NCBI RefSeq assembly: GCF_036588685.1
Contig: NC_086374.1
Coordinates: forward strand, 30,752,001 to 30,816,000
Source: Mytilus trossulus
Lineage: Eukaryota
DNA: 64,000 bases
Reading direction: 5' to 3'
Positions 1 to 25,211 of this stretch are shown in pieces. A program made the translations under genes and the position numbers. Within the stretch, counting starts at the first letter, position 1. Each line of letters begins with the position of its first letter. The notes below the pieces were generated by a model. That model made no database searches, was not told the origin of the DNA, and saw only the letters and a list, made by a program, of their open reading frames with translations.

Positions 1-479
1 AGTAAATCAAAACCATACTAAATGTTAAGAGTATTCCACGCGACTAAATACGCTCATATAAGAAAGAAGATGTGGTATGATTGCCAATGAGACAACTCTC
101 AACAAGAGACCAGTAGGTCACCGTACGTCCTTCGTATTCATTTCTAATATAAAACGGCATGAAAGTCAATTGGGTTTAACTATACAGTGTTCCCACTTCG
201 GTGTTGACATGAATATAAATTTTATGGGCATTTAAAATATTTACTGTATGAATTATTCGAAATACTGAGTTTTTCTTATCCTAGAAATAGATAACGTTAG
301 CCTTATTTGGCACACCTTGTTGAAAGATGTTGTATCTCTTTTGAATAAAACTATTTTGTATAATATTTACCAGTATTAAACCTGTATTATTTTGGCGCAA
401 ATGAAATGTCAATTGGCGCAAAAGTAACGCACTGTTAATTTAGATACAACTATTTATCACGTTGAACCCGTATTCTATT

Positions 480-716
480 AGAGCATTTGCATTATTCACG
501 TATCAGGATACGTGCACGGATCGACGTATACGAATCGACCAGATTTGTTTACAAAAATGAGTTTACCCCGATCTCAATTAAAATAAAATGCATTTATAAT
601 TTATATAATATTTTCATCGGGACCAACTTGACTTAATTTACCCTTTCCTCATATACGTGTTACACGATACGTCGATACGGATACGCCAGCAAATACTTGA
701 TTAATGCAAATGCTCT
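480..716. mobile_element. MITE with ~24-bp TIRs and a 3-bp ATT target duplication
   Basis: AGAGCATTTGCATTATTCACGTAT / ATACTTGATTAATGCAAATGCTCT. Confidence 0.7.
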
Positions 717-2194: not shown

Positions 2195-3350
2195 ATGAAA
2201 TTGTCACTTTTCAGCTAAAGAATCGTCGAAATTCAGCTAAATGTGCCTGTCGATAGCTAAACCCCATAATCTCTCAGTCTTTATACAATAATGCAGATAG
2301 TTAGTTAATTTAAAGATATAAATGACACCAAAAGAAATGTTGGTAAAATTTTGTCCTTAATGGGCTCAAAGTGCCAGTTTGATATTAAAAACATATAGTG
2401 GAAACCTACTAGAGACCGCTCAAATGACGATGAGACCTCCTGGTTTTAAAATGTCCATACAATTTTATAATATTTTAGACTATGTATAAATTTAGATTGA
2501 ATCAAAAGTATTCACCCAATAATGTCTTCTTCGATATCTTCGGTCGACTTCAAATGTCACTTTTTAGCTAAAAATATTCTAATTTTAATTAGACAAAAGA
2601 GGGCACAGGGCGATTACTAAACCCTGATCTCTCAATCTTGATATAAAATGCAGAAAGTTAGTTAATATAAAGATACAAATGACTACAAAAGGGAACTGGG
2701 TACAATTTTTGTAAGAGACCTCCTAAATGACTTGTGTTTTAGTTTCCATAAAATGAATGATATTTGAGGCTATGTATGCATACATATCGTATCAAAAAAA
2801 TCAACATATATATACGGAGGTATTTAATTGTCACTTTTCTTTTAAAACTCGTCGAAAATTTAGGTTAAAAGGGCAATCCCTCCTGATCTTTCAATCTTGA
2901 TAAAACCATGGAGATAGTAAATCAAAATAAGGAATTTGAATACACATGTGGTCTTCCATGTTAACGGAGGGCTCCTTTGTCCTGGGTTATTTTTTTATAC
3001 GATCTATATATACAAAAAGTCTAAAACACCGTTTAATTTTATTGACATTGAAAGACCATGTTGGTTTCGCTGACATTAAAACAGTCACCATTATATATCG
3101 ATAATCAAACTGGTACTTAGAGTCCTCAGTTAAGACATAGAATAAGAATTTTGGCGAAATTCCTTTTTATCTCATTAATCTACATACTATTATGAGAGAC
3201 CAAGAAGTTTTAGCCAACACCCTGAGCCCTTTTAGGTAAATATCCGACGATTTTTTTTTATTGAAAAGTGACACTTTGAGCCCTCCGTTTATATCGAAGA
3301 TGACATTTTTTCCTGGAAAATGTTTTGATGCGACCTATATATTAACATAG
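2195..3350. repeat. Diverged ~280-350-bp tandem units (x3) plus one inverted copy
   Basis: tgtcacttttt..ctaaa..atctctca units at ~2200, ~2553, ~2828; reverse complement at ~3160-3350. Confidence 0.6.
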
Positions 3351-3365
3351 CTGAAGGGGGCGATA

Positions 3366-4030
3366 AAAAAAAGAAGATGTGGTATGAGACAACTGTCCAC
3401 AAGAGACCAAAATGATACAGACATTAACAACTATAGGTCACCAACAACGAACTAAGCCCATACCGCACAGTCAGCTATGAAAGGCCCCGATAAAACAATG
3501 CAAAACAATTCAAACGAGAAAACAAACGGCCTTATTTATATAAAAAATGAACGAAAAACAAATATGTGACACATAAACAAACAACAACCACAGAATTACA
3601 GGCTCCTTACATGGGACAGGCACACAAATAAATAATGTGGCGGGGTTAAACATGTTAGCGGGATTCCAACCGTCTTCCTAAACTAGGACAGTGGTATAAC
3701 AGTACAACATAAGAACGAACTATACAATCAGTTGAAACACATCAGATGGACAAAATACAATTGGATGTGACCGGGTACTTCTACATTCCGACACAAAAGG
3801 ACACAAACACAGATATGAGAGAACTCGCAGTTATCTGACAGCTAGTTCAAAGTCAATAACAACTAATAAAAAATCATGCATCTAAGAAGAAACTATCAAT
3901 CCGTACACATCACACATTCAATGTATTTAGTGTAAAGACGTCATAAACAGCCAGAGAAAGACATGACCTTGTGCAATGCCAAGTTATAGATATCGACTTT
4001 CGAACAGATGTATACTACTGTTGCCTTTGT
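3366..4030 (+). repeat. Abundant interspersed repeat family A (copies also at 58-135, 4510-4790, 5210-5325, 6735-6815, 26910-27390, 49680-49735)
   Basis: aagaagatgtggtatg(attgccaatg)agacaact..caagagacc..ctataggtcacc motif recurs on both strands. Confidence 0.8.
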
Positions 4031-4968
4031 TTGATAATTATGTTTATTGATGAAAAAAAATATTGGATTTAATCGATAATTATTTTTTTAGAATTATGCT
4101 TATCGCAAAAAAATAAAAATTGTATGTAAAGTTAGCGGCCGGTTCGTTATTCGATAGGCGAATGTCCTACCGGTTCTATCAGTCGGTTCGTTAACCAATT
4201 ATTTTCCTGGTCGAAAGTAATAAAAATATATGAATATTCGGTAACATTTATAGAAGCAACATTCAAAGATATAAAGAGTTAAAAACACGATCATTGCTTG
4301 GGCAAAATATAATATCAATCAACAAGTTTAAACATAAAAAGTTTGTATTGAAACTAAAAGTAATAACATTCAAAACAACAAAAACATATAAACTAGAGGA
4401 GTTTTAACTACAAAACCATAATACTCTGAACTTGCGTTCTTAATTAACTTATTTCAAAACAAAGCAAAATAATATTTCAGACTCCATAGATTTTTCAATA
4501 TTATAACAACGATTGTGGTATGATTGCAAATGAGGCAACTCCATATCCACCACATATCAAAGACTGAGAACGAGCCGGGTTACATTCAACTGCAGTCCCG
4601 TACGGTCTGTCTTCCACAATGAGCGAAACCGATTCTGCGTAAAAAGACGCAAAGATCACCAGCATGACGATATATGAAACAAACCAAATGGAAAACAACT
4701 TTTTCACTTATGCTTACACTAATAAATGAAAAAAACAAGTTTTGACTTGGGATAGGCACATTAACAATGTGGAGCGGTTAAACATGTTCTAGTGTTTTAG
4801 TCAATACATGATCGAGGGATAATAAATGAGTTTTGAGTTGTATATACAGCTACTTCTTATCTATCACATTTTCTAGATGCCACGTTTTAACTAAGATTTT
4901 AAGATTAATGCTTTTAAAAACACGTTTTTCTGTTTTCAGCTTTTAAAATTGTATGAAGTAAACATTCA

Positions 4969-5064
4969 ATGGAAGGTTTATTGAAGAGAAAGATATCCTT
5001 CTTTACAGGATACCAAGACAAATGGTTTGTTCTAGCAGACGATGGAAACATAAAACAATTTGAA
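4969..5064 (+). CDS. PH-HSPA12 coding exon 1 (PH beta1-beta3): MEGLLKRKISFFTGYQDKWFVLADDGNIKQFE
   Basis: Acceptor ttttcag at 4939 (implying a further 5' UTR exon), ATG 4969, donor gtaggt 5065; EGxLxK/R...WFVL PH signature. Confidence 0.8.
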
Positions 5065-8000
5065 GTAGGTAGAAGCAATGTCAACATGCTATATTTTTAT
5101 TATTTTATAAATACTTAATTTGGTCCTGGTGCATGTATTTATGATGAGTTTATTTCTAACTTAAGAGTGAACAAGTTCACATAACAATATATTGTTCCTT
5201 TTTATATATAAAAAAAGACGATGTGATATGATTGCCAATGCAACAACTAATCACAAGAGACTAAATGACACAGAAATTTATAACTTTACGTCACCATACG
5301 GCCTTTAACAATGAGCCAAGCTCATTCAAAGCATAAATTCATTTATTTGTTTTAAATAAATCTGCACATGACTGTGTTTTTGTGGGGTTTTATGTCTTTG
5401 TATCAATATATTTTTTATTCTGTTAGATGCAGTAACATTGTCTGGAATTACTGACACATAAAGCTATCTTACATAATAGCGCCTCTCTTCTATATACAAG
5501 AGTTTTCTTAGTACACCCATTGACTTATTTTTTTTTACATAATGCTTCCTTGATGGGACTACCAATGAACGAAACGGTAACAATCAAACTAACACAGAGA
5601 GAGTTGCATGTTATGTAAGCAATATATACACCTAGAAAGATATTGTTTCGTTCTTTGAAAACAAAACGTAAACGATATGTAAAATCAGATCACTTTTATT
5701 TTACTTACACATTAATAACTTTTGATTGTGTCGGTGTTGACATAAATATCAATTATATGGTAATTTTTATAAATTTCCTGTTACAAAACTTTGATTTTCT
5801 CGAAAAAGCAATGATTTTCTTATCCCAGGAATAGATTACCGTAGCCGTATTTGGCACAACTTTTTGGAATTTTGGGTCCTCAATGCTCTTCAACTTTGTA
5901 CTTGTTTGATTTTATACTAGTAACTATTTTAATCTGCGCCTCACTGATAAGCCTTATGTAGATGAAACGCGCGTCTGGCGTATTACCTTTTAATCCTGGT
6001 ACTTTTGATAACAATAGCACTCGACAGGTGTTAATTATTTGCTTAACGATAGTGGAACATATTTCTTGCATTTAATATATATGTCATAACTAATGATAAT
6101 TTGTATATTTCTATACGTTGATATATATGTAGTAAAATTTAACCATAAGCCGACGATGAATTTGTGTATGTCGCATAAAAAGAACTCTTCGTGTCATGAC
6201 AAAGCGTTGTTTATCCTCAGACATAGGCATTTGTCGTCGACATTTGGAACATGGGCGAAGCGCTTCGGAAAATTTGTTTGAGGACCATGGCCGATGGTCT
6301 CTGAACTTGAATGTTGACGTTCAATGCCTAATAATTGATATTTGATGATATGTCCATCATTAAACCATATATATTCTTCCTTGCCAATGCAACGTAGCCT
6401 TAGGGTTAACCTCGAAATCTCTCTACAATAGTTCAGATCATCAACTGTAAAAAAAATAATGTCTTTTTAAATTGCTTTGATAAAATACGATTCTAGGTCA
6501 TCGTTTATCACCCCATCATATCATTAATCGTTACTAATCATCAACACTTCATATCCCAACCCATAAAAGGTATCTATACTCTTAATTGTATCTAAAATGT
6601 CCTTACATACTCCATATGTTTAAACTTTGGGTAAAACCGATCCCCTTTATCGTAAATTGTTAAATGTATTAAAAGAAACTTTATTTTTTATTGATCGTTA
6701 CTTTGATATGAAGTTACACCCCGTACGAACTATAACTGTAAGTGTCTGTGTCATATGGTCTTTTGTGGAGAGTTGCCTCATTGGCAATCAAAGATCATCA
6801 TACCACATTTTCTTTGCTATATTTACAACTTTACCTTAATGAATAAGCATAATAAGCTCTAATATGCTAGAAGACAACCGTACCTGTTTTGTTCATTTCT
6901 TAGGTTCGTCCGTTTGTCCATACCCAAACATCAGTATTTGGTGTTATATATGATTTCAGGTTATCATGTTTGACTTTTAATGGAATATATATTTAATTTA
7001 CATTTCAGCGACAACCAACCGAACCAAATCAAAAACCAAAATGGACGATGAATATTATTGTAAGTTTACATCATACTTATTTCTTAAATTACTTTTTTTC
7101 AAAGATCTTCAAAGGTTGGCAAAAGTTTAAAGATACGGAAAGGCATTATGTAGAAAAAGAAAGGCATTATGAAGATAAAGAAAGACGGACAATTATATAT
7201 GTGGAAATAAATGAATGACAAATAACCACCTGTATGATCAACTAAAAAGGACAAAAATACACCATGTGAAAAAAATAAAAAAAAATAACTAACAAACGAT
7301 GACGCTTCATGTAATGTAAGAAAACTCAAAGTGACACCCCTTCCCATTTTTTTATACTGTATTCCAACCACAATTAATTATGGAACAGGCAGAGGTAAAG
7401 ATTCTGTATTGTAGTATTAATGTATGGACTGTTTCATAATGGCTCTGTAACATGCCCGAGGTATTAATAATGGCCAGGGGTGGTTGTAATGGCAATGAGG
7501 CAACGCCGAGGGCCATTACAACTGTCCGAGGCCATTATTAATATCAAGGGCATATTACATGGCCAATATGAAAAAGTCCATATATTGATACTTTTATTAA
7601 CCAACTAAGGCAACTTCATTCAAGAACAGTCTTGGAGTCTCGGATCCAAAACTATACAGCTAACCACACATCTACAAGAGGACAATACAGAAAAAGCTAG
7701 TTTTATAACATTCTTATAAATTGATTTTAGTTATTCGATTAAACGAAGAGTAAGAAACTAAGAATATACAGGAATTTCATAGCTGAACTTGTCTTTTCGC
7801 ATTCACGATGAAATTTTGGTCAACATTGTGACTGTCAGATGTACTTTCTGAATTCTCATCCAAGTACTTAATTTTATGCTATTAAAATTCATTTCATCTG
7901 GCAAATATAGAGTAGCTGGGAAGTATAAATTCGACAGTTTAACTATTCTTAATCTTTGTCTTGTGTAGTCTGCATTCTGAGGATTGAACAACGGAAATGA

Positions 8001-11000
8001 AACAGTGATAATAATCAAAAGTACTCGAAAAAGGCTGTGAAATATTTCCATTTCATTTGAACTTGTATTTATGACAGTAAGTTAAAAAAAATATGGTACA
8101 CTTATTTGAAGAAATAAACGACATTTTGATTTAATCGATGTCCCGTTTCATCTGTTCATAATGCATGACTGTGATAACGTAATGCACGGGTGTGATTTCG
8201 TAATGCATGACTGAGATTTCGTAAAGACTGGCTGTAGCAATTTCTCCGTTCATAATGCACAGTTGTCGAAATTTTCCTTTTATAAAGCATGGGCATTTCT
8301 ATACATATTGTAGTAAGTTGTTTAATAATAAGTAGTACATAAATAAATTGCATACATAAAACAAAACAATAAAAACCAAAAATAACTGATGCTTTGTTTT
8401 ATTGATTTTTTCACATTTTGAGAACAATTTAGAATTAATTAAGGAAAATTATACATTTTTTTTTAGAAACGGATACCTTTGACATATTCTATTTTTTGTG
8501 GAAGTTGTCTGCTGACGTTTTCGTAAACTTTTTTGTATGTAATGACTAAAAGGGACAAAAAATGAAAAATGAAGAAAAAAAGGATTGTCTAGAAAACTTT
8601 TATGATGTTCGCTGCCTGTTTTTCTTTTTTTTTTATATAAGAAAAATGGGTACTCACTAGGAACTTAATTAGGGGAATTTGTAATGTTACAACATAAAAT
8701 TAAGAATGGGTATGGGGAATGTGTCAAAGAGACAACAACCCAACAATAGAGCAGACGAGGCAACCAATGGGTCTTCAAGGCAGCGACAAACTCCCGCACC
8801 CGGGGGCGTCTTTCAGCTGGCCCCTAAACAAATATGTATACTAGTTCAGTGATAATGGACGTCATACTAAACTCCGAGTTATACTCAAGAAACTAGAATT
8901 CAAAAATCAGATGCCAGAGGCTCCTGACTTGGGACAAGCGCAAATGCGGCGGGGTTAAATATGTTTTTGAAATCTCAACTCTCCCCTTACACCCCTAGCT
9001 ATATATAGCCAATGTAGAAAAAAGAAACGCACAACAATACGCACTGTAAAACTCAGTTTAAGAGAAGTCCGATTCCGATATCAAAAGTGGTAACAAAAGA
9101 AAATAAGCAAAATGACAATAATACATAAATAACTTAGACAAAAGACTACTAGCAGTTAATGATATGCCAGCTTCAGACCTCAATTAAACTGATTAAAAGA
9201 TTATGTCTTCATCATATAAATATCAGGCACAATCCCTCCCATTTGGGGTTAAGTTTTATACCATCATAAGACATATGAAAAGAATTCAACCCGTGGCATG
9301 CAAACACTGGTTTTTAAAATAAATGTGTTTAATTCCGATTCAAAGACCCTACAATTGAATCAATAGTAAAGCCAACATATGCAATCTTTAATCACTGACA
9401 ACTATATCCCTTCTTAATAAGTCTGCTTAAGATTTTGTAAGCTTTTGAGGTGAATACAGATATGTGTGTGCTTTGTAAAGAATATTACCATAAATGATTA
9501 GATGTGAAATACCTGAACGTATAAGATGTCTGCATGTGCAGTTATATTTACGAATGATGTCCTTGTACCGATGATAAAATGTGTAAATGTTTTGACTACT
9601 TTGTGATATCGAAAACCCTGGTGTAATAAATTTTCAGTAACACAAACATTTATCTCGCTAACATCTAAAACGTTGTAAATAAACTCATCATAGATATCAG
9701 GACAAAATTTTGCATATACGACAGACGCGCGTTTCGTCTTCAAAAGACTCATCAGTGACGCTTGAATCACAAAAAGTTAAAAAGGCCAAAATAAGTACTA
9801 GATTGAAGAGCATTGAGGACTAAAGTTCCTAAAAGTTTTGCCAAATTCAGCTAAGGTAATCTATGTCTGAGGTAGAAAAGCTTTAGTATTTCAGAAATTC
9901 TTTTTGTAATCAGTTAATTTATAAATATACTGAACGACTTTATAAACGCAACACTCCTTTTGTTGATTTTTTTTAACAAATCTTTTTTTATTCTCTTACA
10001 ACTACTTTTTATGCTTATCATGCTTCTTTCTCTTTACACAAAATCAAAATCTGACTTACCTGTGGTTATTGAACATACCAAATTTTTGAAGTCGCACGAA
10101 TTTCTTAAAGCGAAATTGTGGTCCCATGAACGATTATTTCAGTTATTTTGCTTTGTGAAACAGTTCTTTCAATCCTTTGCCTTACTTACTTTTTTTTAAA
10201 TGTTGCATCTCCATTTTGCCAACTCAGAGAAATAAAAAAAAACCAAAGAACTGAATTAGCCCTTAAGAATACTGCAAATATGAATACATAAATGTGCTGC
10301 AAACCGTATGACTTCAGAAACTCGTTCTAATGTCCTTCCGACAATGATACAAGTAGACAAAATTTGTTGCTGGCCATCAATGAACAGATCAACCTGTAGT
10401 GACAATGAAACATCAACAGAATTTGATTATGCAACGTCATTTGCTAATCATGTTTACGGCCGCAACGTCAACTGCTAACCAAATTGCCGAGTGCCATTGA
10501 GTACAGATTCATGCCATAAATGTTTCCCATGAACTGCATTGCCAAAGAATTGACTGAAGGAAAACTTGTAAAGCCCTCAAGTTCCAACCGCATAATTGCC
10601 AAAACCAACTAATGGGTTGAACAAATGCAAAATCAGAAGGTGTAAAACAGAACCCAAAAAATGTCAGACAGAATTTGTTGACCTTTCTGACAATCATTTT
10701 GGCGTAAGTAACAGGCAGTCATCGCTTTTGACGTTGACACATTCATTAAAAAAATAACACAAACATAAGCTAGTGTTGCGTTTCTAAAGTCGTTCAGTAT
10801 ATAAGCATATCAATTATTCATGTCAGCACAAAAAGTGCTGACTACTGGGCTTGTGATACCCTCCGGAAAATAAATCTCCACCAGCAGTGAATCGTAGTAA
10901 TTGAGATGTATAAACATATACGATGTTGACAAGGGAACGCCACCATCTAAAAATTGATAATTAACGATAGGAATGGAAAATCATCTCTTTTATCTTAAAT

Positions 11001-14000
11001 TTGTGTATTTTAAAAGCTTTCCGTTAATGATATTAATATCAAGATCGAGCAAAGGGCAATGGTAATTTTTAGTATTAGCTTTAACTAAAGTTAGTTCAGC
11101 AAGATAAATTTCTTTAGTATACATACTGAAGTCGTCATTATTGAGAGCCAATATATCATCCAAATATCTAAAAGTATTATTAAATTTTTGTATCAGATAT
11201 TGTTTCGATGGATCGTTGCTAATTTAAGTTCATAAATTGTACCTCATAGTAATACACAAAAAAGTCCGCAAAAAGTTTTAACAATAAATGGACGGAAACG
11301 AAGACTACACTATAATTTGCAAAAGATGTTTTGTAAGCGAAACCGGGAATTAGAAAAGAAATCAATTGAAAAAATAACGAAAACAATTTACTTGAGAGTG
11401 CAATCGAGTTCCGAAGATAATCATGTAGTTGCAGTATCGTATCGCTCATGTAAAAACAAACCAGATAAAAAGTCGAATTCGGTAGGTCCAATTCGGGGAA
11501 AAGGGACGGAGAACATACATAATAAATCAATTGGGTTCTTCAAAACTGACTGACTAGAAGGACTTGCATACAACTTAAACTGCCACTAAAAAGGATTATG
11601 TCGGATATAGAAGCGGGATTTTTTCCACGCAATACTTCCACTTAACCGTAAAGAAACACAAGTTTGTTAAGGAGGAACAAACTGTTATACTATTACAATA
11701 CGATGCAATGGATTGTACGCCTTCGATCTGACAACCCATGGGTGTGTATGTATAGACCCGCACAGATTTATGTACCATGACAAACATTAGAAAAATACCA
11801 ATCATGCTGTTCGGTGTAAGCCAGGTCTCCGTTTTGAAGGCTGTACCTTGACCTATAATAGTTTACTTCAATAAATTGTTATTTGGATGGAGAGTGTCTC
11901 ATTAGCACTCATTCCACAACTTCCTATACCTATATCAAACTGATGGTTTTAAAGCCAGCAGAAACGATTTTTTTACGGACGCCAACACGAGTTGTTGACC
12001 GCCATGAATTATAGTTTCACAGATGTTAGCGAATATGTTCCTAATGTCGTAACTACAATCCCTTCCCCTTTCTCCAAATTAGACTTATTACCGGCTTTGT
12101 ACTAACATGAGCAACACAATGGTTGTCACGTAAGGAGCAAGATCTGCTGAGGTTAACCCATGTTTTCGGTGGGTTTCTTGTCAATTTGTCTTTAGTATCT
12201 ATATTGTCTTTTGTGTACCATTGTCTGTCTGATTTCTTTTTTTCAGACATGGCGTTGACAGTTTATTAATCTTTTTATTAGTTTTTATGTCCCTCTTGTA
12301 TCTGTCGGTTCTCTTTTGATGTACATATTTAAAAAACAAAGAAGATAAGTAATTAAGAGTATCGAATATTCTCCTCTATTTGCAGCTTGCAGATGTAACC
12401 ACGAAGGATGATGGTCTCCGATTTGTTGTTACTGCAAGTAATGGTCGAACCCTCAAATTGAAAGGTACACATAATGATTTAAAAATCAAATAATAATACG
12501 TTGATGTATTGCACAATAATAATTATGCAAACACGTTTAAAAAGTAGAATCACAAAAAAACTGAACTCCGAAGAAATGTCAAAACGGAAAGTCCCTAGTC
12601 ATATGGCAAAATCCAAAGTCAAACACATCAAACGAATGGATAACAACTGTCATATTTCTGATTTAATACAGGCATTTTGTGGAACTAAAAAGGTAAGTTT
12701 TTATGCTGTTTTCTTTCTTTTTAAGCACCAAACAAAGAGGAAAGAGAAAAATGGACAAAGCTGTTTAAGATCATAAACGAAAAACATTTCTCCGTAAGTT
12801 TTCCGGTTAATATTTATATTTAACGTATGATATGGTATTATAAAGTAAGATGATATTACTAGTTTCATAGTGTGCTAGTGAGCTAATTCGATATATATAT
12901 GGGGTCAGCGAATTCCATATGGAGTGAGAGCGAAGCTCAAATCCTCATATGGAATTTACTGATCCATGCATATATGTATATAGATTCTACCACTGAATCG
13001 AGTGTAATACGATATTTATCCACTTTCAAATTTAAAACGCGAGAGTGGATAAATATCGTATTACACGAGATTCGATGGTGAAATCTGTTTCTCTAATGAC
13101 TTTCTGACATTATACAGGCAAACTTTATCTTCTTTTCGAATGATCTGCAAAAAGATGTGTTCTTTCTATGTGACGTCATCAGGCATGGTGGTCTTTGTTC
13201 ATGCCGTCACAATACATATCAGAGGAAAGCAAGCACATTCGACGTCATAATCGGATTTTAACCAATGAAGTGCTGAGATTAAACGAACCACACGTTGATT
13301 AAATTTTGTTTATACTATGGGTGCAGAAAGGGAAAAATTGACGAAGAATATATGTATCGTATTAGGTCACTAGCATTCTTTGTACGTATCTAAGCTCTTA
13401 CCCGATATTGAATTTACTGACCTCATATATATCTTGTTTGAACACTATCACACTTTGTAACGAATTATTCGTACGTACTATCTTAACATTTGGTATTGGC
13501 ATATCAAAGGGATTAAGTCTTCAATACTTGGTAATAAAGAACCTACTCCGAGTTATCTACACAAAAACAAATGTCAACAATAACAACTTTTAAGCTTTAA
13601 TGTGTTTTAATGAATCTATTATAATCTTTCACTTTGAATTTCTTCGTGCGTTAAACCTTGCTGTTTACAAAACACACATATGATAATAAAAAAACGCAGA
13701 TTTTTCAGTAATATATGCAGACAGTTGATATTGCCAAAAAATTCTGTTCACTTTAAATTTTATAAAAAGGTTTCTACGATTTGTGTGAAATATAAGATGT
13801 TAAACCTGTTTCTTCCAATATTCTCAGAGTTTCAATTAGGCAATGCCTAAATACCACCGTCATCTATTTATAATTTATAATATGTTTTTCTCAGACAGGC
13901 ATAAATAAACATTAAAAGTTAAAACTGTTAGTTGATTTTGATTTTAGTTAATTTACTCAAAAAATGAAGACAAAGGAGATTTCAGACCTACAGCTCAAGG

Positions 14001-17000
14001 TTTGTGATGACTGTTATCTTCAATATAAGACAAGTTATTGATTCTCGATAAATTCGTTATTACTCCAAAAAGCATACATTGATTTTTTTTAATTTCCTTG
14101 CTAGATTTGTATTCAAATAAAAAAAAATACATCTTTTATTAAAGTGACACTATAAATTTCGTGCGTCTGGAGCGATTTTCTGGGTTTATCTCGACCAGCA
14201 GGGACGCTCAAACTTTAGAACGCCTGGGAAGTAATTAAACTTAGCCACGGCAAAAACAGACCTAAAATATATAATATATATATATAAAAATAATAATAAT
14301 GGAATATATAATATCGCTTTTACTGTCTCCTATCAAATGTTAAATTGAATCATCATTGCTTTAAAACAATCGGTTTTGCTTCACGTTTATGTTTAAGTCA
14401 GAGTAAGTTGACGGAGAGTAATCCCATTGGCAATCATACCACATGTTATCGCCATATGTTAGTTCACACAACAAAGTAATAAGCAGTATAGAAATATACA
14501 ATCAATTCGCAGTATACATTTTCCAAAACAAATTATGCAGAAAAACTGAAAAAAAATGTTTTAGTATTGCTTCTAACTACGAATAAGCATTTTGATATTT
14601 TCCCAAAAATGTGCATTGATTGGAAAAGAGCATTATAAATAAGAAGCCATATTAAGTGGAATTTCTCAATAAATTTCTATATTTGAAAAGCGGTAATATT
14701 TTAATTCATTCTACTTTATATTTTGAATATTTTCATTTTTGACAGATCAAGGAAATGTTGTACAGTCAGAAGTTTCTTCTGATGAAATGAGAAGCCAGGA
14801 ACTGTTTAAGAATATGTCATTGAAGCCAAAAGGGTTAGAAAATTATGTGCTGTATTTAGATAAAAACTATGATTATGTTTCTATGGATAGCGATACTGAC
14901 GCTTTCTTCAGAAAATTAATGAAATCAAATAAGTTTTGAAATTGAAATCTGAATAAATCTTAAAAAATTATAATAATTCACCTAACATTTCTAAATAAAC
15001 TAAAAACTTCCTTCATAATAGAAATTCATCAGGCCGTTCGTGGACTCTGAAGATAATATCTTATTAAACTATTTTCCCGTCTGTTAAAATAAGACAATGA
15101 ATTACATATTTTTTTAAAGAAAGGCGAAATATACCATTGGGACATTCAAACTCAAAGATCGAAAATAAATTAGCCATGCCATGACAAAAACCATAAAGAC
15201 ACACAACAGTTCATAATACACAACATAGAAAATAAAAAATTGAGTAACACGAACTCCAATATAAAAAGGTGAGCTCAGGTGCTCCGAAAGGATAAACAGA
15301 AACTGATCTACATTTGGAACCCGTGGTGTTGTTGATGAAAACCATATGTTGACATCTGCTGGAATTTTTGTCTAATGTGATTTTGTCTCTCTAGTGTTTT
15401 ACCTAGTAGAATAGTCATTATTGAAAACGGCACTAGCATTATTCTTCCCAGAGGATGCATCTCAACCCGGACGAATTTTCAGTGTCATGACCTTGTTTTG
15501 TCAGTATACTATTATGAATAGATGCACGTGTACCAACACTGGCTATTTGCAAATATTTAACTCGCTATCTTCAATATTGTTGTCTAACATCGATGACGTC
15601 TAGGAGGCCACACTTCTATTGCCCCATACATCCTCGAAGTAATTCCTTGAATAAGTACATGTATTCTTTAAATATGTTTTGCATCGCAATTAAGAGGAAT
15701 GAAAATATAAAAAGATCGCGACATTCAGGCGTACAAGAACATGGTAAATTCATTAATCAAACTTTAAACATTTTTTATATAGAAATTTCACCATGGTTGC
15801 TGCTATTGACTTTGGATCAACATATTCTGGTACTGCATTTTCCTCTAAGTCTGATTTTACTAGAAACCCTCTACATATGTATGTAATGGCAGGGGTTGGA
15901 AAAATCAATAATATGTCAACAAAAATTCCAACTGTTCTGCTTTTGAACCCGGATAAAAAGTTTGAGGCTTTTGGTAATGAAGCCGAAGAAAAGTATGCAA
16001 ATTTGGCGATATATGACCCACAGTATGCAAATCAGTGTTATTACTTTACTCGATTCAAGATGCAAATTTACAATAACAGGGTAAGTTTGTAATATCAATA
16101 ATAACAACTTGAAAACGAATACCTATAGAAATATCTATTTGAATATATATTTTTTTTTATATAAAAAGTATTTTCTTTAGTTTACAAATTATAACTTAAT
16201 CTTATTACACTATCAAAGTGAGAATGAAAATGGAGAAACTGTCAGAGACAACAACCCGACCACAAAACAGATAACAGCCGAAGTCTTCAACGCAGCGAGA
16301 AAAATCCCGCACCCGGAGGTGGTCCTGAGCTGGTTCTTAAATAAAAATGTGTACTTATTCAGTGAAAATGGACGTCATACTAAACTCCAAAACATATAAT
16401 ACTGAACTAAAATTAAAAATCACACAAGACTAACAAAACCCAGATGCTTCTGGCATCCTTGTTTTCATTTTGTTACCACAATACGTTGTATAACTTGCAT
16501 TTAAACGACAATGATAAACATACAGAAATTAAACAGTACAAGACCAATTGCAATTAAAACCCGTTAAACGATACGATCTCAGAATTTACGGAAGGTCTTA
16601 TACCGCACTCACATTGCCAATGTGAAACTGATAACACAAAATAAAAAAAAAAAATTAAAAATTAAAAAAAAAATCAAAAGACAAAATGACAAAGGAGTAG
16701 ATTCAGTAAGACCCCGTTTTGGCCCCAAAATCTGGCAGTTTTACAAAATTATGAAACTGTAATCTTCTAGCTATTTACAGGAAAGTAGAATGCTGCTGCT
16801 ACATAAATATGGGCTGTTATTGGCAATACAATACATAACATATATAAAAGTTGAGGATGAACACGGATGTGGCCACTTGTTTTTGACAAAAACCATCTGA
16901 AAAGTGACGTTTTTTTTGCATATTTAATAGATTGTTAACATTTAAGCTTGAATCGGAGCATTTCTAATGACTAAATCAGTTAATATCTTTCACAAAAACT

Positions 17001-20000
17001 GATTGAATCAATAGAAGCAGACACTTAAGTGTTTAAAAAGTGTCTAAAATCTTTGGTTAGATGAAGCTGAAATTTGAGGCCGAAATCGGCCCTTACTGGA
17101 TCTACTCCTTTACATTGAAAACTAAAGACAAAAAATCGAATGCTCTGAAAGTGTGAGCTGACTGGAATATTGTGTTAACAGTTTTATAAAATATTTACTT
17201 CATATGCAGGCAGTAAAAGAGGAGCGAAAGATACCAGAGGGATAGTCAAACTCATAGATCGAAAATAAACTGAGAACGCCATGAAAAATGAAAAAGAAAT
17301 ACAGACAAATAATAGTACACATGACACAATATACTTGAACATAGTAAAGAGAATAAGCAGAACGAAGTTTAATTCCATGGAAATTGACAGTTCCTTACTG
17401 AAAAGCCGATATCATCTATATTATCGTAAAAAATTGTTCTCAACCGTTTCTTGTTGTCAACTTAAAAGTAAAATCACAAATATACTGAACTCAGAAGAAA
17501 ATCAATTCGGAAAGTTCATAATCACATGCCAAAATCAAATAACAAAACGCATCAAAAACGAATGGACAAGAACTGTCATATTCCTGACTTGGTACAGGCA
17601 TTTTCAAATGTAGAAAAAGGGGGATTAAACCTGGTTCTATAGCGATAGATAACCCTCTCACTTTAATAACAGTCTCATCAAATTCCGTTATATTTACATG
17701 ATGCGTTAAATAAACAGTCACCACAATTAATAAAAGTCAAAATATGGGTATATGTGCATCAGTCATCAACGTATAACAATTTTAAAAGGGACAATTTAAC
17801 AGAACACAAAAACATCTTCTATCTACGAACACATTGATTGATTTGAGTGTCTGACGTCAGATTTTTTTTATGCGTCACATAAATTTGTCGTTCAATGTGC
17901 ATACAAACAGTTTTAAAATTTACATAGGCATTGTAAGCATACAGGGTTAAAACATCAAAAGTATGTAAGAATAAATTACAGAAATAGACCGAGATTCAAA
18001 CTAGTCCAAAAGTTATAGGTAGAATTTATGAGAATCCAAAATTCCACTACGCGGTTGAATGATTTGGACTAAATGAAGGTCAAGAAACTAGAAGATATAA
18101 CAAATTAATTGCAAGCAATAACAACTTATAAAAGCAGATGATAACAGAAGTTGATCAATATTTTAGTACTTTAAAGTACCAATAAAAAAGTGGATATGAA
18201 ATCGACAGTGAATTCTGGTCGGGTTCTCAATTTGAAAAGTGAGAGTCTATCACAAAAACTCATCTTATCCAAATAGTAGGGTAAAGTATGTCGGTAATGC
18301 AATAAAGGATTTATAATGGCTGCAACACATAAAAAAGTGTTATTATCATTTGATATCAAATATAGATACTTAGCTTAATAACATTAATAATTTCAGGATT
18401 TGAAGAAATCGTTGACCATTAAAGATATCAGTGGAAAAAAAGAAATGAAAGCAGTCGATGTGTTTGCTGCTTGCATTGAATACTTGAAAAACGCTACCTT
18501 CACAAGAGCAAAGGAGCAAATTCCAAAACTCGAAGAAGAGGACATTCACTGGGTACTTACGGTACCAGCAATATGGACAGAAGCTGCACGACAGTTTATG
18601 ATAGATGCTGCTGAAAAGGTACATGTGCCTGGTACTAAAAAATAAACTACACACTAAAACCAGAAGGCACTCTTAATAAATTTGAACAAGTGGGTTACTA
18701 CCATAAAAGTCAAGTTGATAGATTTTTTTGTTATTAATGTCATTTGGTTGCTACTATTGTCAGAACTTGTCATAGTACATCAGAACTGTTCGAGAATACT
18801 TATTCCCTATAACTGTTCTAAACACAAATTTAGGGTAAAAATGTCCAAAACTGTTCTATGGTAGAAATTTAAGGATCTGTTCAAGAATAGAATTGTTTAA
18901 AACTGATCTTTGAACTGTCAAAAATAATTGTCTGTCGTGCGTTACGTCTGTTTGCAGACAACTCCTTAGCGCTTAAATTAAAATAAATGGAAGGCGAAAT
19001 CAAATACGAAGGTGAAAAGAAATGAAAACCAAAATCACAGTAAGATTGTGCAAATTTCGACCAAACCTCTCACTAAATAGGAGGAGAAAGCCCTAAGTGT
19101 TGCGAATAGTTAAAAACAATAACAAACAGTAAATTTACAATCAACACAATAGAGCTGACTACTAAACCTAGTGATATCACGTTGTCAAATGTTCATCAAC
19201 AGTGGCATTGATCCATTGGTTTAAAAAAAAACAACCATATACCAAGCATTTTTATTGTTAGATAGAAGAGTTTATGTGTGAAACTTTTAAAAAGTTGCCT
19301 ACTCTAGAAAAGTTTTCTTAACGGGTTCATAACAATATGGTTCAGGTGACCAAAAATTCTGGTTGAAGTTTGCAACGTGGATTGGCCAATATTACAGAGA
19401 TATAAAGGAAGATGCCATATACTTAAGTGTTCTAGATCTTTCAAGTATCATTTCTTTTTTTTTTTTTTTTCATTATGCCCATCAGGTGCTCAAGTATGGG
19501 GCGGTGGAATAATTTGCACTTACATAGCTGTGTATGTTATGTGTTGCTATTTATAGGCACTTAAAAGAGGGACAAAAGATACCTGAGTGGCAGTCAAACT
19601 CATGGATCAAAAATAAACTGAAAAAGACATGGCTAAAAAAAAAGACAAAAAAGAGACAAATAATAGTATACTAGTGCAAAATAATAAAAAAAACCTAAAG
19701 ACTAAGCAACACGAACCCCACCAACATCTGGGGTGATCTCAGGTGCTCGGTAAGGGTAAGCAGATCTTGCTGCACATATGGCACCCGTTATGTTGCTCAT
19801 GTTATTACAAACCAGGTAAATAGTCTGATTCGGTAGGTCACATTTGTGAAAAGGGAAGGGGATTATAAGTACGACACAAGGAACATATGCGATATCATCT
19901 GTGAAACGGTTGATCCATAACGATCAACCAACTCGTGTTTGCGTCCGTAAAATTTACGATGGTATGATTTCAACTCTACCATTTTGAACTCTTAGTTTGA

Positions 20001-23000
20001 AGGTTTTCCTGTGAGCAGTAGCTCTCTATCAAGGAAATACAAGCCCGGGAATATCGTTCCAATTGGGAGATACAGACGCTGCTGGAATTTTGCTGCATAG
20101 AAACGGAAAGTTCTTAATTGGGAATCCTCTCTGTTGTCGTAAAGTTTTGTTTTCAACCGACCCTCATTGTCAATTTTTAGATTTAAGCCAAGAAATGAGG
20201 CATACTCAGCTGTGTCTGTTGCATCTTTTATCTCTAGTTCGACGGGATAGACGTGTTCAACACAATCACCAAATTTTGAATTATTTTGTGAGAGCACATC
20301 ATCTAGCGAAAAGTAAATGTAAAGGATATTGCTAACTTCTTATAAGAAGTTCCTGTATGTAGTCAGCCTCATAATAATACAGGAACAAGTCGGCAAGAAA
20401 AGGGGCACACTTGGTTTCCTTTGGAATTCTGAAAGTCTGCTGAAACTATTACTATAGAAAATCATATATATATATTTTTATCCAAATAGAGTGGAATTTA
20501 CGAAGACAATCTAACACTCGCATTAGAGCCAGAAGCTGCTGCTTTATGCTGTAGAAGCTTGGAGATAGAAAAGAAAGATAAAGGCCAAAGCCCACAACTT
20601 GGTTCTTTTAGTCCTGGGTCACGTTTTCTGGTCGTAGATCTTGGAGGTATATTAATACGTAATCATACATAAGATATAATGTAAAAAGGTGTAATGGTTT
20701 TTGTTAACCTAATATATTTAAGTAGAGCTTTCAAAATCAAAAACATTGCACAATAGGCTATTTGCCAATTCCCGTAATTGACCCTTTAATTAGAGATTCC
20801 TTTTTAGTTGTCTCCCTTATGAGGGACAATAATTTATATTTACAATGGAGAGCTAGCAGTAAGAGCAAATTAACCTGTGCGTAATGCGAGCAATTTTTAA
20901 GGCTCTCAAATCTTTTAATTGCATTAATTTTTATGCCCCACCTACGATAGTAGAGGGGCATTATGTTTTCTGGTATGTGCGTCCGTTCGTCCGTATGTCT
21001 GTTCGTTCGTCCGTCTGTCTGTCTGTCCGTTCGTTCGTCCGTCTGTTCCGCTTCAGGTTAAAGTTTTTGGTCAAGGTAGTTTTTGATGAAGTTGAAGTCC
21101 AATCAACTTGAAACTTAGTACCCATGTTCCTTGTGATATTATCTTTCTAATTTTAATGCCTAATTATATTGTTTATCCAATTTCATGGTCCATTGAACAT
21201 GGAAAATTATAGTGCGAGTGGGGCATTCGTGTACTTTGGACACATTCTTGTTTCTTAATGTAAATACATCACTTTCAATTCATCATGCTTTCATTGGCAA
21301 AGACCAATTTTGTCCGGTATGGAACCATTCTACGATTGACAAAGGGAAGTTATTCGTTAAAAAAGTATGTAATAACAGAATGAAATCGGTCATTGGCAAA
21401 TGGACTATTGAACGTAAACGTTAAGTATAGTGAGAAACAGTAGACAGAAACGTTTGAAAAATCGATTTTATAAGAGATTTTGCGTTGTATTTTAAATCGC
21501 GAAATCGAGATAACAGGTAAGTGGAACGGAAAAAACACAAAAATCGAATTAATTCAACCATTTTGCTTCATTTGTTTTCGCCTTTTCAAGATTTCGTGTT
21601 TGCGTTATTTTCTCTATATATTAACAAACGTATTTTACACAGTAATTAGAAAGTTCCAACAAACATGGACGAATGAAACTTTAACTGATAATTTTAGTCT
21701 TATTCAACTTGATTAAAGTATTTTTGAATTAACACTGTACAGAATCGGGTGTGTCTATTCTGTGTTGGTCTTAGCATTATGTATTCGGGTTTCGTTTTCT
21801 GTAACTAGTTAATACTTCAGTTTCATTATGTATATCTCTTTTATATTCATTTGATAAAATTTACTGTTCGCGATAGCATTAATTGTTCTAAATAATAAGG
21901 ATATTCTCTAATCCCAAGCTTAAAAACATAGCCGTATTTGACACAACCTTTTTCAACTTTTGATCTTCAGTTCTGTACAACTTTTTACTGTTTTAGTCTT
22001 GTGTGGACGAGGCGCGTTTTTGGGGTATTGAATTTTAAACCTGATGCTTTTTGTTATCTATTAATCATGTGTTTCTTTTTCTAACATGTTCTCCTATTTA
22101 TTTGTATTGTAGTCCTGTTGTCATTTCAATGTTATATTTAACATGGCCATTAAGGTGCGAGGTTTGGCTTGCCAAAAAAACAGGTTCAACCCACCATTCT
22201 TTTCCCCCATTTTTTTCCCTTTAAAATGTCCTGTACCAAGTTAGGAAGATGGCCATTGTTATATTATTGTTCGTTTCTGTATGTGTTACATTTTGACGTT
22301 GCGTCGTTTGTTTTCTCTTATTTTTTAGGGTAAATTCACATTGCGATAAGACGTGTCCCGGTACTTGTCTATCCCAAATTCATGTATTTTGTTTTGATGT
22401 TATATTTGTTATTCTCGTGGGATTTTGTCTGATGATTGGTCCGTTTCTGTGTGTGTTATATTTCAGTGTTGTGTCGTTGTTCTCCTCTTATATTTAATGC
22501 GTTTCCCTCGGTTTTAGTTTGTTACCCCGATTTTGTTTTTTTGTCCATTGATTTATGAGTTTTGAATAGCGGTATACTACTGTTGCCTTTTTTTTGCATA
22601 TTATTAGCATCTGTTTTGTTATTCATTATGGTTTGACGAGTATAAGTATTAACGATGTACAAATGTAATAGGATAGTCAAGAATTTAAACCATTCATGGT
22701 CATTATTTTCTCTGCAAAATGTACTGAAGATATACTATATCAAAAGTGAAATTTGATTTAGTAAATCTTAATCGTATAACTCATTTTGTGTTGGAATTGC
22801 TGTAATGAAATAACAATGTTAATTATCAAAACATTTACTAAATTGCATCATTGGTACAACATTCGTAAATAAAGCTCAACATGCAGACTTCTTATACGTT
22901 CAAGTATTTCACAGCCAATTTTTTATGGAAATATTCTTTATAGAGCACAAAAATGTCAGTATTCACATCAGAAGCTAACAAAACCTTAAAATAGACTTAT

Positions 23001-25211
23001 TTAGAAGGGATTTAGTTACGATACTGTTGTCACGTCATTAAAGATAGCATATTTGGGCTTTAATATTGATTCACCTATAGGTTCTTTGCATCGGAACTAA
23101 ACACATTTATTTAAAAACCAGTTATTGGTATGACACGGGTTATGTTCTTCTCATATATGCTATGATGGTATGATACTAAACCCCTAACGGGAGGAAGTAT
23201 GCCTGATATTCTAATAATGAAGACATAATCTTTCAATCAGTTTAATTGAAGTCTGGAACTGGTATGTCAGTGAACTGCTAGTAGTCTGTTGTTATTGATG
23301 AATAATTGTCATTTTGTTTATTTTCTTTTGTTACATCTTCTGACATCAGACTCGGACTTTTCTTGAACTGAATTTTAATGTGTGTATTGTTATGCGTTTA
23401 CTTTTCTACATTGGCTAGAGGTTTAGGGGTGGTTTAGATCTTATTTTATATGTTTAACCCCGCCGCATCTTTGCGCCTGTCCCAAGTCAGGAGCATCCGA
23501 CCTTTGTTAGTCTTGTTGTATTTTTAATTTTAATTTCTTGTGTATAATTTTGAGTTTAGTATGGCGTTAATTATCACAGAACTAGTATATATATTTGTTG
23601 AGGGGCCAGCTGAAAAACGCCACCGTGTGCTGGAATTTCTCGATGCATTGAAGACCTATTGGTTACCTTCTGCTGTTGTCTGTTCTATGGTCGGGTTGTT
23701 GTCTTTTTGACAAATTCCCCATTTCCATTCTCAATTTTATCTATGTCAGTCAATACTCGCAGTCGCAATTGGTCATAGTTTTGAAAATTATATTATCCAG
23801 TGAGGTTTTATGTTAGTTGGTTATCATTATCCAACCTTTTTGACATTTTCAAACGCGGAGAAGCGAAATTGTCTCGGCGGATCGGGATTTTGTCTTTTGA
23901 AAATATAGAGGCTATAACATAAAAACGCAAAAACTTCAGCTTATTTTTACACATTCTTTTGCGGCGAAGAAATGCACACCATAGTTAAGGGTTGAATTGT
24001 TTCAAATATGAACCATAACACGTATTTAACAATTATCTAGATTCTACCAAGCTTCAAAAAATTTCTATATTTATAAAGATATAATAGTTATTACATCTAT
24101 AATTATATCGAATTACTTTATAATATGATGAAGCAATGTACAATGTATCAAAAAGTGTTTCTATATATTTTTCATTTTTTTCACAACAGGTGGCACTGTT
24201 GATATAACAGCAAATGAAGTGATGACAACAGGTCAGATAAAGGAAATACACAGTGCTTCTGGGGGTCCTTGGGGAGGAAATATGATAAATACTAAAATGT
24301 GGAAACTTCTCAGAGAAATTTTTGGCACCAAAGTACTTAGTACCTTTTCTTTAAATAATAGAGAGGATTATCTAGATTTGGTAAGAGATATCGAACGTCA
24401 AAAGAGGTCATTTAATAGCGATCGAAAATGCACGATTGAACTACCAAGCTCACTGATAATTGAAGTTAAAAAGTCAAATCCTGATATGGTTGCAGAGAAA
24501 TATAAAGGCAAAGCCGAAATAAAAAAAAACAAACTTCAGATTATTCCAGAGGTATTAAAATCAATTTTCAAAGAAGGTATCGACAAAATTATTGGCTATG
24601 TACAAAAGTTACTGAATGAACCCGAAACATCCAAAGTGAAGAGCATTCTTTTAGTTGGTGGATATGCATCATGTGACCTTCTCGTGCATGCAATAAAAGA
24701 ACACTTCAACCATTTAGCAGTAATATGTCCATTGCAACCTGATGTTATTGTCTTGAAGGGAGCGGTAATCATGGGTCATATGGAAACTCCTATTGTCGGT
24801 AGAATGGCAAAATATCATTATGGCATAGCACTTACTGGTGAAGAACGGAAGTCGAACTTCGATGGTTCACATACGTCATTTCCGACTTCACCACAAGAAT
24901 TTTATACCATTATTCAAAAAGGCTCCCCAATACAAGTAAATGAGGTTGTAACCGAATATGATTTCCCGATTGATGTTAACCAAGACGAAGCTAACATTCA
25001 AATTTATGCATCAGAAGAAAAACAGGCACCTAAGCTTATCTCAGAAGAATCTTGCAGAAAAATTGGTCATATTCGCATCAAACTTCCTCGATTTCGGCGA
25101 ACTACCAAACTGAGAATAGTAATATCAAATGACGAGACGGAATTCAAAGTAGTAGCTAGAGAAGAACACACCGGAAAGTGTTTTGTAGGAGTATGTAGGT
25201 TTCTTGATTAA
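4969..25211 (+). CDS. HSPA12A: PH-domain / HSPA12 (heat shock 70 kDa protein 12-like) fusion gene, 10 coding exons, 710 aa: join(4969..5064,7009..7059,12386..12464,12726..12793,13948..13999,14746..14833,15783..16080,18397..18618,20490..20646,24190..25211)
   Basis: All introns are GT..AG with matching phases (0,0,1,0,1,2,0,0,1); total 2133 nt = 711 codons. In-frame TGA at 4954 precedes ATG 4969. HSPA12 motifs: VAAIDFGSTYSG, WVLTVPAIW, LALEPEAAA, VVDLGGGTVDIT, ILLVGGY, VLKGAVIMG; no EEVD. The symbol denotes the family (12A vs 12B cannot be resolved). Confidence 0.85.
5725..6012 (+). mobile_element. Retrozyme-like unit, hammerhead core mutated (CTGATAA)
   Basis: cactgataagccttatgtagatgaaacgcgcgtctggcgt within family flanks. 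Confidence 0.7.
7009..7059 (+). CDS. PH-HSPA12 exon 2: RQPTEPNQKPKWTMNII
   Basis: atttcag|...|gtaagt, phase 0/0; matches the PH 'PKGxIxL' beta4 region. Confidence 0.75.
7413..7592. repeat. ~180-bp imperfect palindrome (probable end of a non-autonomous element running to ~8330)
   Basis: AGTATTAATGTATGGACT...GTTGTAATGGC / GCCATTACAAC...AGTCCATATATTGATACT. Confidence 0.8.
8694..9690 (+). repeat. Interspersed repeat family B (copies at 16215-16450, 23060-23740 minus, 42195-42475)
   Basis: ggggaatgtgtcaaagagacaacaaccc..cagctggcccctaaacaaat..actagttcagtgataatg. Confidence 0.8.
9718..9761 (-). ncRNA. Minimal type-I hammerhead ribozyme, intact core
   Basis: GCGTCA-CTGATGA-GTCTT(TTG)AAGAC-GAAA-CGCGCG-TC-TGTCGT; one stem I mismatch. 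Confidence 0.8.
9930..10797. mobile_element. Non-autonomous DNA transposon with 26-bp TIRs and TA(TA) target site, inserted in a retrozyme/PLE unit
   Basis: CTGAACGACTTTATAAACGCAACACT vs reverse complement of the right end CTGAACGACTTTAGAAACGCAACACT (25/26). Confidence 0.82.
10900..11275 (-). mobile_element. Penelope-like retroelement RT remnant (YLDD)
   Basis: Minus strand, with frameshifts, reads FNNTFRYLDDILALNNDDFSMYTKEIY..ELTL..CPLLDLDI..DKRDDF..PIVNY.FLDG. Confidence 0.75.
12386..12464 (+). CDS. PH-HSPA12 exon 3: LADVTTKDDGLRFVVTASNGRTLKLK
   Basis: tttgcag|...G|gtacac; PH beta5-beta7 pattern. Confidence 0.75.
12726..12793 (+). CDS. PH-HSPA12 exon 4: APNKEEREKWTKLFKIINEKHFS (PH C-terminal helix)
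   Basis: ttctttctttttaag|...|gtaagt; the A-x3-EE-x3-W helix carries the near-invariant PH Trp. Confidence 0.8.
13948..13999 (+). CDS. PH-HSPA12 exon 5 (linker): LIYSKNEDKGDFRPTAQ
   Basis: attttag|...G|gtttgt; phase 0 to 1 bridges exons 4 and 6. Confidence 0.6.
14746..14833 (+). CDS. PH-HSPA12 exon 6 (linker): DQGNVVQSEVSSDEMRSQELFKNMSLKPK
   Basis: tttttgacag|...GG|gttaga; phase 1 to 2 matches the exon 7 acceptor; overlaps ORF 14739..14939. Confidence 0.65.
15783..16080 (+). CDS. HSPA12A: HSPA12 exon 7: Hsp70 NBD start (VAAIDFGSTYSG)
   Basis: ORF 15793..; acceptor tatag at 15782, donor gtaagt 16081. Confidence 0.93.
16693..17109. mobile_element. MITE with ~40-bp imperfect TIRs (possibly Kolobok-like)
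   Basis: AGGAGTAGATTCAGTAAG... / ...CTTACTGGATCTACTCCT. Confidence 0.7.
17460..18060 (-). repeat. Interspersed repeat family D (copies at 12540-12680, 28250-28500, 39160-39320, 62720-63620)
   Basis: aaaccaggtt(c/t)aatcc..ttttctacatttgaaaatgcctgtaccaagtcaggaatatgacagtt..tgagttcagtattt. Confidence 0.75.
18397..18618 (+). CDS. HSPA12A: HSPA12 exon 8 (IHWVLTVPAIWTEAARQFMIDAAEK)
   Basis: tttcag|GAT...AAG|gtacat; HSPA12 signature. Confidence 0.93.
19563..20445 (-). mobile_element. Penelope-like retroelement 3' part (RT/thumb remnant plus 3' tail)
   Basis: ORF 19992..20297 VYPVELEIKDATDT..SFLGLNLKIDNEGRLKTKLYD; upstream GIPKETKCAPFLADLFLYYYEADYIQELL; tail shared with 43710-44150. Confidence 0.8.
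20490..20646 (+). CDS. HSPA12A: HSPA12 exon 9 (SGIYEDNLTLALEPEAAALCC...RFLVVDLG)
   Basis: aatag|AGT...G|gtatat; not in the ORF track; conserved EPEAAA and DLG. Confidence 0.92.
20928..21251 (+). mobile_element. HINE/DINE-1-like non-autonomous Helentron element
   Basis: Sub-terminal IR atgcccca/tggggcat, (CCGT/CTGT/TCGT)n microsatellite, 3' hairpin gtgtactttggacac, T-rich flanks. Confidence 0.75.
21730..22592 (+). repeat. Composite repeat: degenerate hammerhead-unit relative followed by a family-D-like tail
   Basis: tagccgtatttgacacaacc..gtcttgtgtggacgaggcgcgtt then caggttcaacccaccatt..cctgtaccaagttagga. Confidence 0.55.
24190..25211 (+). CDS. HSPA12A: HSPA12 terminal exon 10 (GGTVDIT...SGGPWGG...VGGY...VLKGAV...RFLD*)
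   Basis: caacag|GT; 330-aa ORF 24219..25211; AATAAA at 25272. Confidence 0.95.

Follow-up and report, generated by a model that had tools for sequence, protein, structure and literature searches.

A FAPP/ORP-like PH domain at the N-terminus of an HSPA12-type ATPase in a mussel gene subfamily, with a possible address at phosphoinositide-rich membranes

A stretch of Mytilus trossulus DNA of 64,000 nucleotides (contig C2, 30752001-30816000; hereafter the window) contains an intact, transcribed gene of ten exons in which a PH domain is fused to an HSPA12-type ATPase within a single transcript and a single reading frame. An earlier reading made from the window sequence only (the sequence-only reading) had proposed this fusion, and it holds: one transcript and one frame join the PH exons to an ATPase whose motifs are intact. 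The gene is a member of a mussel subfamily, and the explanation that best accounts for the observations as a whole, which we regard as probable rather than secure, is that the PH domain would anchor the ATPase at membranes rich in phosphatidylinositol 4-phosphate (PI4P).

The window is AT-rich (∼32% G+C), and its sole long open reading frame (ORF) lies at 24219-25211. Joining ten plus-strand exons between 4969 and 25211 gives a coding sequence of 2133 nt for a protein of 710 residues, with the frame open across all ten exons and canonical splice sites throughout. An equality test showed the translated join to be identical, residue for residue, to the M. trossulus protein XP_063422464.1 (P0174, 710 residues), which RefSeq labels “heat shock 70 kDa protein 12A-like”. 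Six small 5′ exons of 96, 51, 79, 68, 52 and 88 nt, bordered by AG and GT, run in phase onto the ATPase exon at 15783. Of the short segments read directly from the DNA, the fifth and sixth could not be joined in frame, which indicated that one exon was missing; it was then placed at 13948-13999 by tblastn of public homologues against the window. The sequence-only reading had put six exons of these sizes at these places, in phase with the ATPase exon, and the exon borders, RNA joints and identity with RefSeq confirm them and exclude a chance arrangement. The in-frame stop codon expected upstream of the start was likewise found, and the predicted 710-residue product is exactly that of RefSeq.

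Searches were made with single exons or public proteins as queries, XP_063422464.1 standing for the spliced product. When the last exon was compared by phmmer with 1.84 billion representative sequences, proteins of 754 and 715 residues, both with Pfam PH and HSP70 matches, were among the closest. Proteins of 710 residues are present as RefSeq models in four species, Mytilus edulis, M. galloprovincialis, M. californianus and M. trossulus.

Transcript evidence came from four public runs (four studies, two organism labels), whose contigs were placed on positions 10200-16199 of the window. Spliced contigs contained GT..AG joints at 12464/12726, 12793/13948 and 13999/14746 and between exon 6 and 15783, the last being present in all four runs. 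That the contigs are spliced indicates an origin in cDNA, despite the runs being labelled only as probable RNA. An 848-nt contig from run X1 comprises exon 7 and exon 6 and then continues for ∼550 nt further 5′, beyond the region compared. For the joints upstream of exon 3 the evidence is indirect: the 710-residue orthologue P0182 and the paralogues P0001, P0006 and P0151 (715-756 residues) are encoded on Logan contigs of only 2.4-2.5 kb, a length that leaves spliced mRNA as the sole source. Exon 3 through to the ATPase exon, part of the stretch for which junction reads had been suggested as a check, is joined by contigs of the four runs, the joint from exon 6 to 15783 being present in every run.

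The joint of exon 6 was reported as 14831->15781, with the RNAs carrying AG and the window GG at 14832-14833. This difference reflects a polymorphism in the penultimate base of exon 6 and not a non-canonical splice. Residue 145 is Gly in the assembly and in XP_063422464.1, and Arg in the contigs of the four runs and in the 710-residue orthologues compared. A further GT is present 18 nt beyond the exon 6 donor (window 14834-14851); its use would keep the frame and add six residues, and the equivalent site is used by the M. edulis model P0152, but no joint at this alternative donor was seen in the contigs of the four runs. Intronic stretches at 10800-11200, 11800-12000, 12400-12800, 13000-13400 and 14400-14600 showed very high summed contig depth in the four runs, with many loose ends, and are probably dispersed repeats transcribed elsewhere.

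The first four exons, as the sequence-only reading had supposed, encode a PH domain (residues 1-98). XP_063422464.1 scored above the cut-off with both of the Pfam profiles that had been proposed as checks, namely PF00169 (26.2 bits, cut-off 25.1, E 1.2e-5, residues 1-89) and the HSP70 profile PF00012 (60 bits, cut-off 20.6); PF00169 scores in the paralogues range from 31 to 78 bits. Residues 1-100 have PH clusters only as their nearest neighbours in the ESM Atlas. With a 14-sequence alignment as input, AlphaFold2 predicted strands at residues 2-10, 14-22, 27-31, 44-52, 61-66 and 71-75 and a helix at 79-96, with predicted local distance difference test (pLDDT) values of 72-86. The modelled fold is the β-sandwich with C-terminal helix of a PH domain, six strands being modelled and not seven, and Trp85 in the helix is invariant in 14 of the 14 aligned sequences.

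Comparison with solved structures points to a particular class of PH domain. A profile of 14 family proteins, searched against all Protein Data Bank (PDB) sequences, matched the PH domain of ORP11 (2d9x) with an E value of 2.7e-12 over profile positions 3-101 and that of FAPP1/PLEKHA3 with E values of about 1e-8 (3rcp, E 7.5e-9; 2kcj; 2mdx). Of the 60 best matches of this profile, those to ORP11 and FAPP1 alone were PH chains, the others being Hsp70s. Exon 1 alone returned six PDB matches, all to FAPP1 or CERT PH domains (FAPP1, E 0.011). By these matches the domain is assigned to the FAPP/CERT/OSBP-ORP (COF) class, the PI4P/Golgi-targeting kind.

In the HMMER alignment to FAPP1, R7 falls on K7, K18 on R18, F11-F12 on Y11-L12 and TG.Q on TGWQ. 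All 14 aligned proteins have a basic residue at position 7, and all except a pair of paralogues of 715 and 717 residues have one at position 18. In FAPP1, Lys7 holds the 4-phosphate in place, Arg18 contributes positive charge, and Tyr11 and Leu12 enter the bilayer (PMC2854595); the K7A/R18L form serves as a control mutant defective in PI4P binding (PMC13472501), and PI4P and Arf1 are both ligands of the FAPP1 PH domain (PMC3987136). Because the mussel domain is of COF class and keeps basic residues at both of the positions that are critical for PI4P in FAPP1, targeting to PI4P is plausible. The broader suggestion of phosphoinositide targeting made by the sequence-only reading is in this way narrowed to PI4P by class and by residues 7 and 18, with binding itself predicted from sequence likeness.

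Beyond the PH domain, the protein consists of a flexible linker (residues 99-147) and the HSPA12-type ATPase (residues 148-710). Residues 98-142 are predicted to be disordered by AlphaFold2, with pLDDT values below 50 in the part encoded by exon 5. The PF00012 match covers profile positions of about 95-429 of 599. Four ATPase motifs are invariant in the family, AIDFG.TYSG (phosphate-1), LEPEAAA (catalytic Glu), DLGGGT.D (phosphate-2) and LVGGYA (adenosine). Foldseek with the whole 710-residue model matched Hsp70 chains only, aligning it with DnaK, BiP and Hsc70 at E values of about 1e-20 over ∼600 columns with 16-18% identity. The protein ends in ...CRFLD, without EEVD. All of the named top matches are HSPA12A/B-like, the names being those of the source annotation, and the nearest named ESM Atlas clusters are HSPA12A/B of molluscs and chordates, which have PF00012 only and no PH (chordate HSPA12A, score 0.90). 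Nearest relatives among HSPA12A/B, a partial Hsp70 profile match and the missing EEVD tail place the ATPase in the HSPA12 subfamily by sequence. Applied to the HSPA12 module, “chaperone” is a label by homology.

The window gene is one of several. Exon 1 found 12 copies in its own genome, distributed over four chromosomes and all ending at the same intron position: two on C2 (the window gene and a head-to-head neighbour), two on C13, six within ∼260 kb on C14 and two on C7. Exon 1 of the head-to-head paralogue, L006, lies at C2:30720363-30720458 (-), 31.5 kb before the window and 36.5 kb upstream of the ATG. Its product matches the first 32 residues of the 839-residue M. edulis protein P0205 exactly; in P0205 a second PH domain, at residues 54-141 and strongly canonical (PF00169, 77.7 bits), interrupts the family PH domain in a split-PH arrangement. 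One of the six C14 copies, L012 (C14:8837582-8837674, -), has an in-frame TGA in exon 1 and is probably a pseudogene member.

A quick IQ-TREE maximum-likelihood tree of ATPase cores, made without rows P0011, P0207, P0210 and P0186 (which have no AIDFG start), placed 17 PH-bearing proteins derived from Mytilus or Logan in one clade with 100% support in the Shimodaira-Hasegawa-like approximate likelihood ratio test. Adjoining this Mytilus clade is a Pinctada imbricata model, P0220, whose PH domain is cut at the N-terminus and gives no Pfam PH match; a profile search and a search with P0220 returned no further PH-HSPA12 from outside Mytilus. Between orthologues, identity is 93% in the PH domain, 67-86% in the linker and 88-97% in the ATPase; between paralogues the corresponding values are 51-58%, 12-22% and 60-65%. 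Identity in the PH domain thus tracks that in the ATPase, which argues that the PH domain is maintained like the enzyme and that the linker is free to diverge, except for a short helix with the invariant Phe136. This pattern of conservation indicates that the PH domain is under purifying selection.

The simplest reading of these sequence relationships is one fusion, after which tandem duplication gave about a dozen mussel PH-HSPA12 genes. Exon shuffling, which the sequence-only reading had invoked as the origin of the fusion, is plausible, but no donor emerged when PF15409 was searched against the same genome. A CERT-like gene, L015 (C4:20175463-20175597), was rejected as donor of the PH exons since its intron follows β4 and not β3 as in the PH-HSPA12 family, and a single-exon PH gene, L013 (C8:3523034-3523291), which resembles sesquipedalian/PHETA, was rejected as well. 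Among other bivalve HSPA12-like proteins, many of 900-1240 residues (Solemya, Mya and Mercenaria; P0010, P0046, P0188-P0193 and others) seem to be tandem ATPase duplications rather than fusions with other domains, and P0034 has a weak N-terminal match to HEPN_DZIP3.

In the proposed mechanism, R7 and K18, together with insertion of the F11-F12 loop, would let the PH domain anchor the ATPase to PI4P-rich membranes, at the Golgi/trans-Golgi network (TGN) and possibly at endolysosomes or the plasma membrane, perhaps assisted by an Arf-type GTPase, and the flexible linker would let the ATPase reach membrane-proximal clients or partners. Taken by itself, the claim of FAPP- or ORP-like binding of the PH domain to PI4P-rich membranes, with the ATPase thereby concentrated at them, is finely balanced, and our judgement falls slightly short of endorsing it. 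The bolder proposal, that FAPP/ORP-type PH domains tether a family of about a dozen mussel Hsp70-like ATPases to PI4P membranes, those of the Golgi/TGN or the plasma membrane, is put forward tentatively and must be called doubtful.

Several observations weigh against this explanation. The PF00169 score of the window protein is barely above its cut-off. Trp8 and Trp15 of FAPP1 are replaced by Lys and Tyr, residue 17 is Asp, and the 715/717-residue paralogue group has Gln18 and Arg16. Most PH domains bind phosphoinositides without useful affinity, and FAPP1-type targeting also needs Arf1. Three proteins, P0199, P0008 and P0213, fall within the PH clade though they have no PH domain, one of them keeping the end of the linker; these may be losses or truncated models. 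A PH-less isoform is also hinted at by P0185, a Logan ORF that starts from an internal Met.

The main rival to PI4P anchoring accepts that the fusion is real and takes the PH domain to be a protein-binding or regulatory module, contacting a small GTPase or a client or docking on the ATPase in an autoinhibitory manner, with the protein remaining cytosolic. Binders specific for phosphoinositides are a minority of the PH superfamily, many members of which bind proteins, and the replaced tryptophans, the acidic residue 17 and the loss of the basic position 18 in one paralogue group are all in keeping with such a role. The closest solved relatives, however, are all PI4P binders, the basic character of positions 7 and 18 is kept with the one exception given above, the tip of the β1-β2 loop is hydrophobic, and a disordered linker of 50 residues fits a tether better than it fits a docked regulator. 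We consider a protein-binding PH domain unlikely, if a serious competitor to anchoring at PI4P.

A second alternative is that a promoter of its own, a short way ahead of ATG 15793, drives a PH-less HSPA12 as the principal product, the PH transcript being minor or a read-through. ATG 15793 does open the ATPase right at its conserved start, and database ORFs that begin at the internal Met exist (P0185, 562 residues, on a 2.7-kb Logan contig; P0002, 549 residues, a partial model). Yet every contig that reaches the 5′ edge of exon 7 is spliced to exon 6, in all four runs, and none extends into the intron upstream of 15783, although the contigs give no transcript starts or abundances. The PH domain and the intron positions are moreover conserved in 12 paralogues and at least five species, and the RefSeq models of four species have 710 residues, which makes a predominantly PH-less product improbable. 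An artefact of annotation or assembly, or a pseudogene in decay, for which there is no direct support beyond the stop codon in exon 1 of a family member elsewhere in the genome (L012), can be dismissed, the ten exons being open, canonically spliced, identical to RefSeq, supported by RNA and conserved.

Table 1. Exons of the PH-HSPA12 gene and the upstream stop codon, in window coordinates
Feature	Position	Strand	Evidence or remark
In-frame TGA	4954..4956	+	12 nt upstream of ATG; read directly
Exon 1: ATG, residues 1-32, predicted PH strands β1-β3, R7, F11 F12, K18	4969..5064	+	PH_20 E 0.005; only PDB matches FAPP1 and CERT PH domains
Exon 2: residues 33-49, loop and predicted PH strand β4	7009..7059	+	Sequence, tblastn, protein equality
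Exon 3: residues 50-76, predicted PH strands β5-β7	12386..12464	+	RNA joint to exon 4 in runs X1, X8, X6
Exon 4: residues 76-98, C-terminal PH helix with invariant Trp85	12726..12793	+	RNA joint 12793/13948
Exon 5: residues 99-116, predicted disordered linker	13948..13999	+	RNA joints on both sides; pLDDT <50
Exon 6: residues 116-145, linker with short conserved helix (ELFKNM, invariant Phe136)	14746..14833	+	RNA joint to 15783, four runs
Exon 7: ATPase start (AIDFGSTYSG, phosphate-1 motif), internal ATG 15793	15783..16080	+	Sequence, tblastn, protein equality
Exon 8: ATPase	18397..18618	+	HSP70 E 0.005, exon alone
Exon 9: ATPase, LEPEAAA motif and start of DLGGGT	20490..20646	+	Sequence, tblastn, protein equality
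Exon 10: remainder of ATPase (GGTVD, LVGGYA), β-rich C-terminal domain, stop codon	24190..25211	+	Long ORF, AlphaFold, Foldseek

The favoured reading, in which the PH domain would tether the ATPase to PI4P-rich membranes, has partial parallels in known systems. The N-terminus of FAPP1 (PLEKHA3; 3rcp/2kcj) is colinear with that of the mussel protein, following MEG.L ... TG[WY]Q.[RK]WFVL, and the mussel PH domain keeps the basic positions 7 and 18 and the hydrophobic pair 11-12; it differs at the two tryptophans. FAPP1 is, however, an adaptor of small size, and the related FAPP2 has a glycolipid-transfer domain, whereas the partner of the mussel PH domain is an Hsp70-like ATPase. ORP11 (OSBPL11; 2d9x) provides the best solved PH match, and in ORP proteins the PH domain is also N-terminal and separated by a long linker from the working domain, which is a lipid-transfer domain (ORD) in ORPs but an ATPase in the mussel protein.

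On the ATPase side, vertebrate HSPA12A and HSPA12B share the atypical Hsp70-like ATPase, but they have no PH domain in the Atlas clusters, and their genes are single or few and do not form a tandem family. Ordinary bivalve HSPA12 proteins of about 570-600 residues are 35-40% identical in the ATPase core, without the PH domain and linker, and fall outside the PH-bearing clade. Canonical Hsp70s (DnaK, BiP, Hsc70) have the same nucleotide-binding fold and motifs, with an alignment that includes the β-rich C-terminal part; low identity, the limited profile match and the lack of EEVD in the mussel protein set them apart.

Two further features of the window were noted. A type I hammerhead ribozyme (RF00163) matched at 53962-54005 (+) with 35.7 bits against a gathering score of 34. 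No perfect trimeric heat-shock element was found upstream of the gene, and the only one in the window, at 56265, is no more than chance would give.

The sequence-only reading had described the PH domain as hidden and the fusion as possibly unrecorded, and this part of it does not stand. The PH-HSPA12 fusion is modelled by RefSeq in five Mytilus species, several family proteins are named “PH domain-containing protein” in UniProt, and precomputed Pfam matches pair PF00169 with PF00012, so automated annotation had already made both the gene model and the two domains public. Full-text literature searches, including papers on the HSP70 family, found no published description of PH-HSPA12. What is new is the assignment to the FAPP/ORP class, the conservation of the lipid-contact residues, the number and clustering of the family members, the single clade and origin that their sequences suggest, and the splice evidence at the locus. 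The practical value is smaller. RefSeq, UniProt and Pfam already hold the gene model and domains.

HSPA12 genes make up the bulk of the large bivalve Hsp70 expansions and are used as stress markers. Their copies number hundreds in bivalves (PMC11268181, PMC10939072). A PI4P-type address label would offer a concrete and testable hint as to where some HSPA12 proteins work. If the favoured reading is true, the mussel protein would offer a rare example in which a lipid-binding domain, and not J-proteins, recruits an ATPase of Hsp70 fold. On the bolder and doubtful proposal, the family would constitute a lipid-addressed ATPase or chaperone system with no counterpart in model organisms, which might guard the very active secretory pathway of mussels (byssus, shell and mucus) under intertidal stress.

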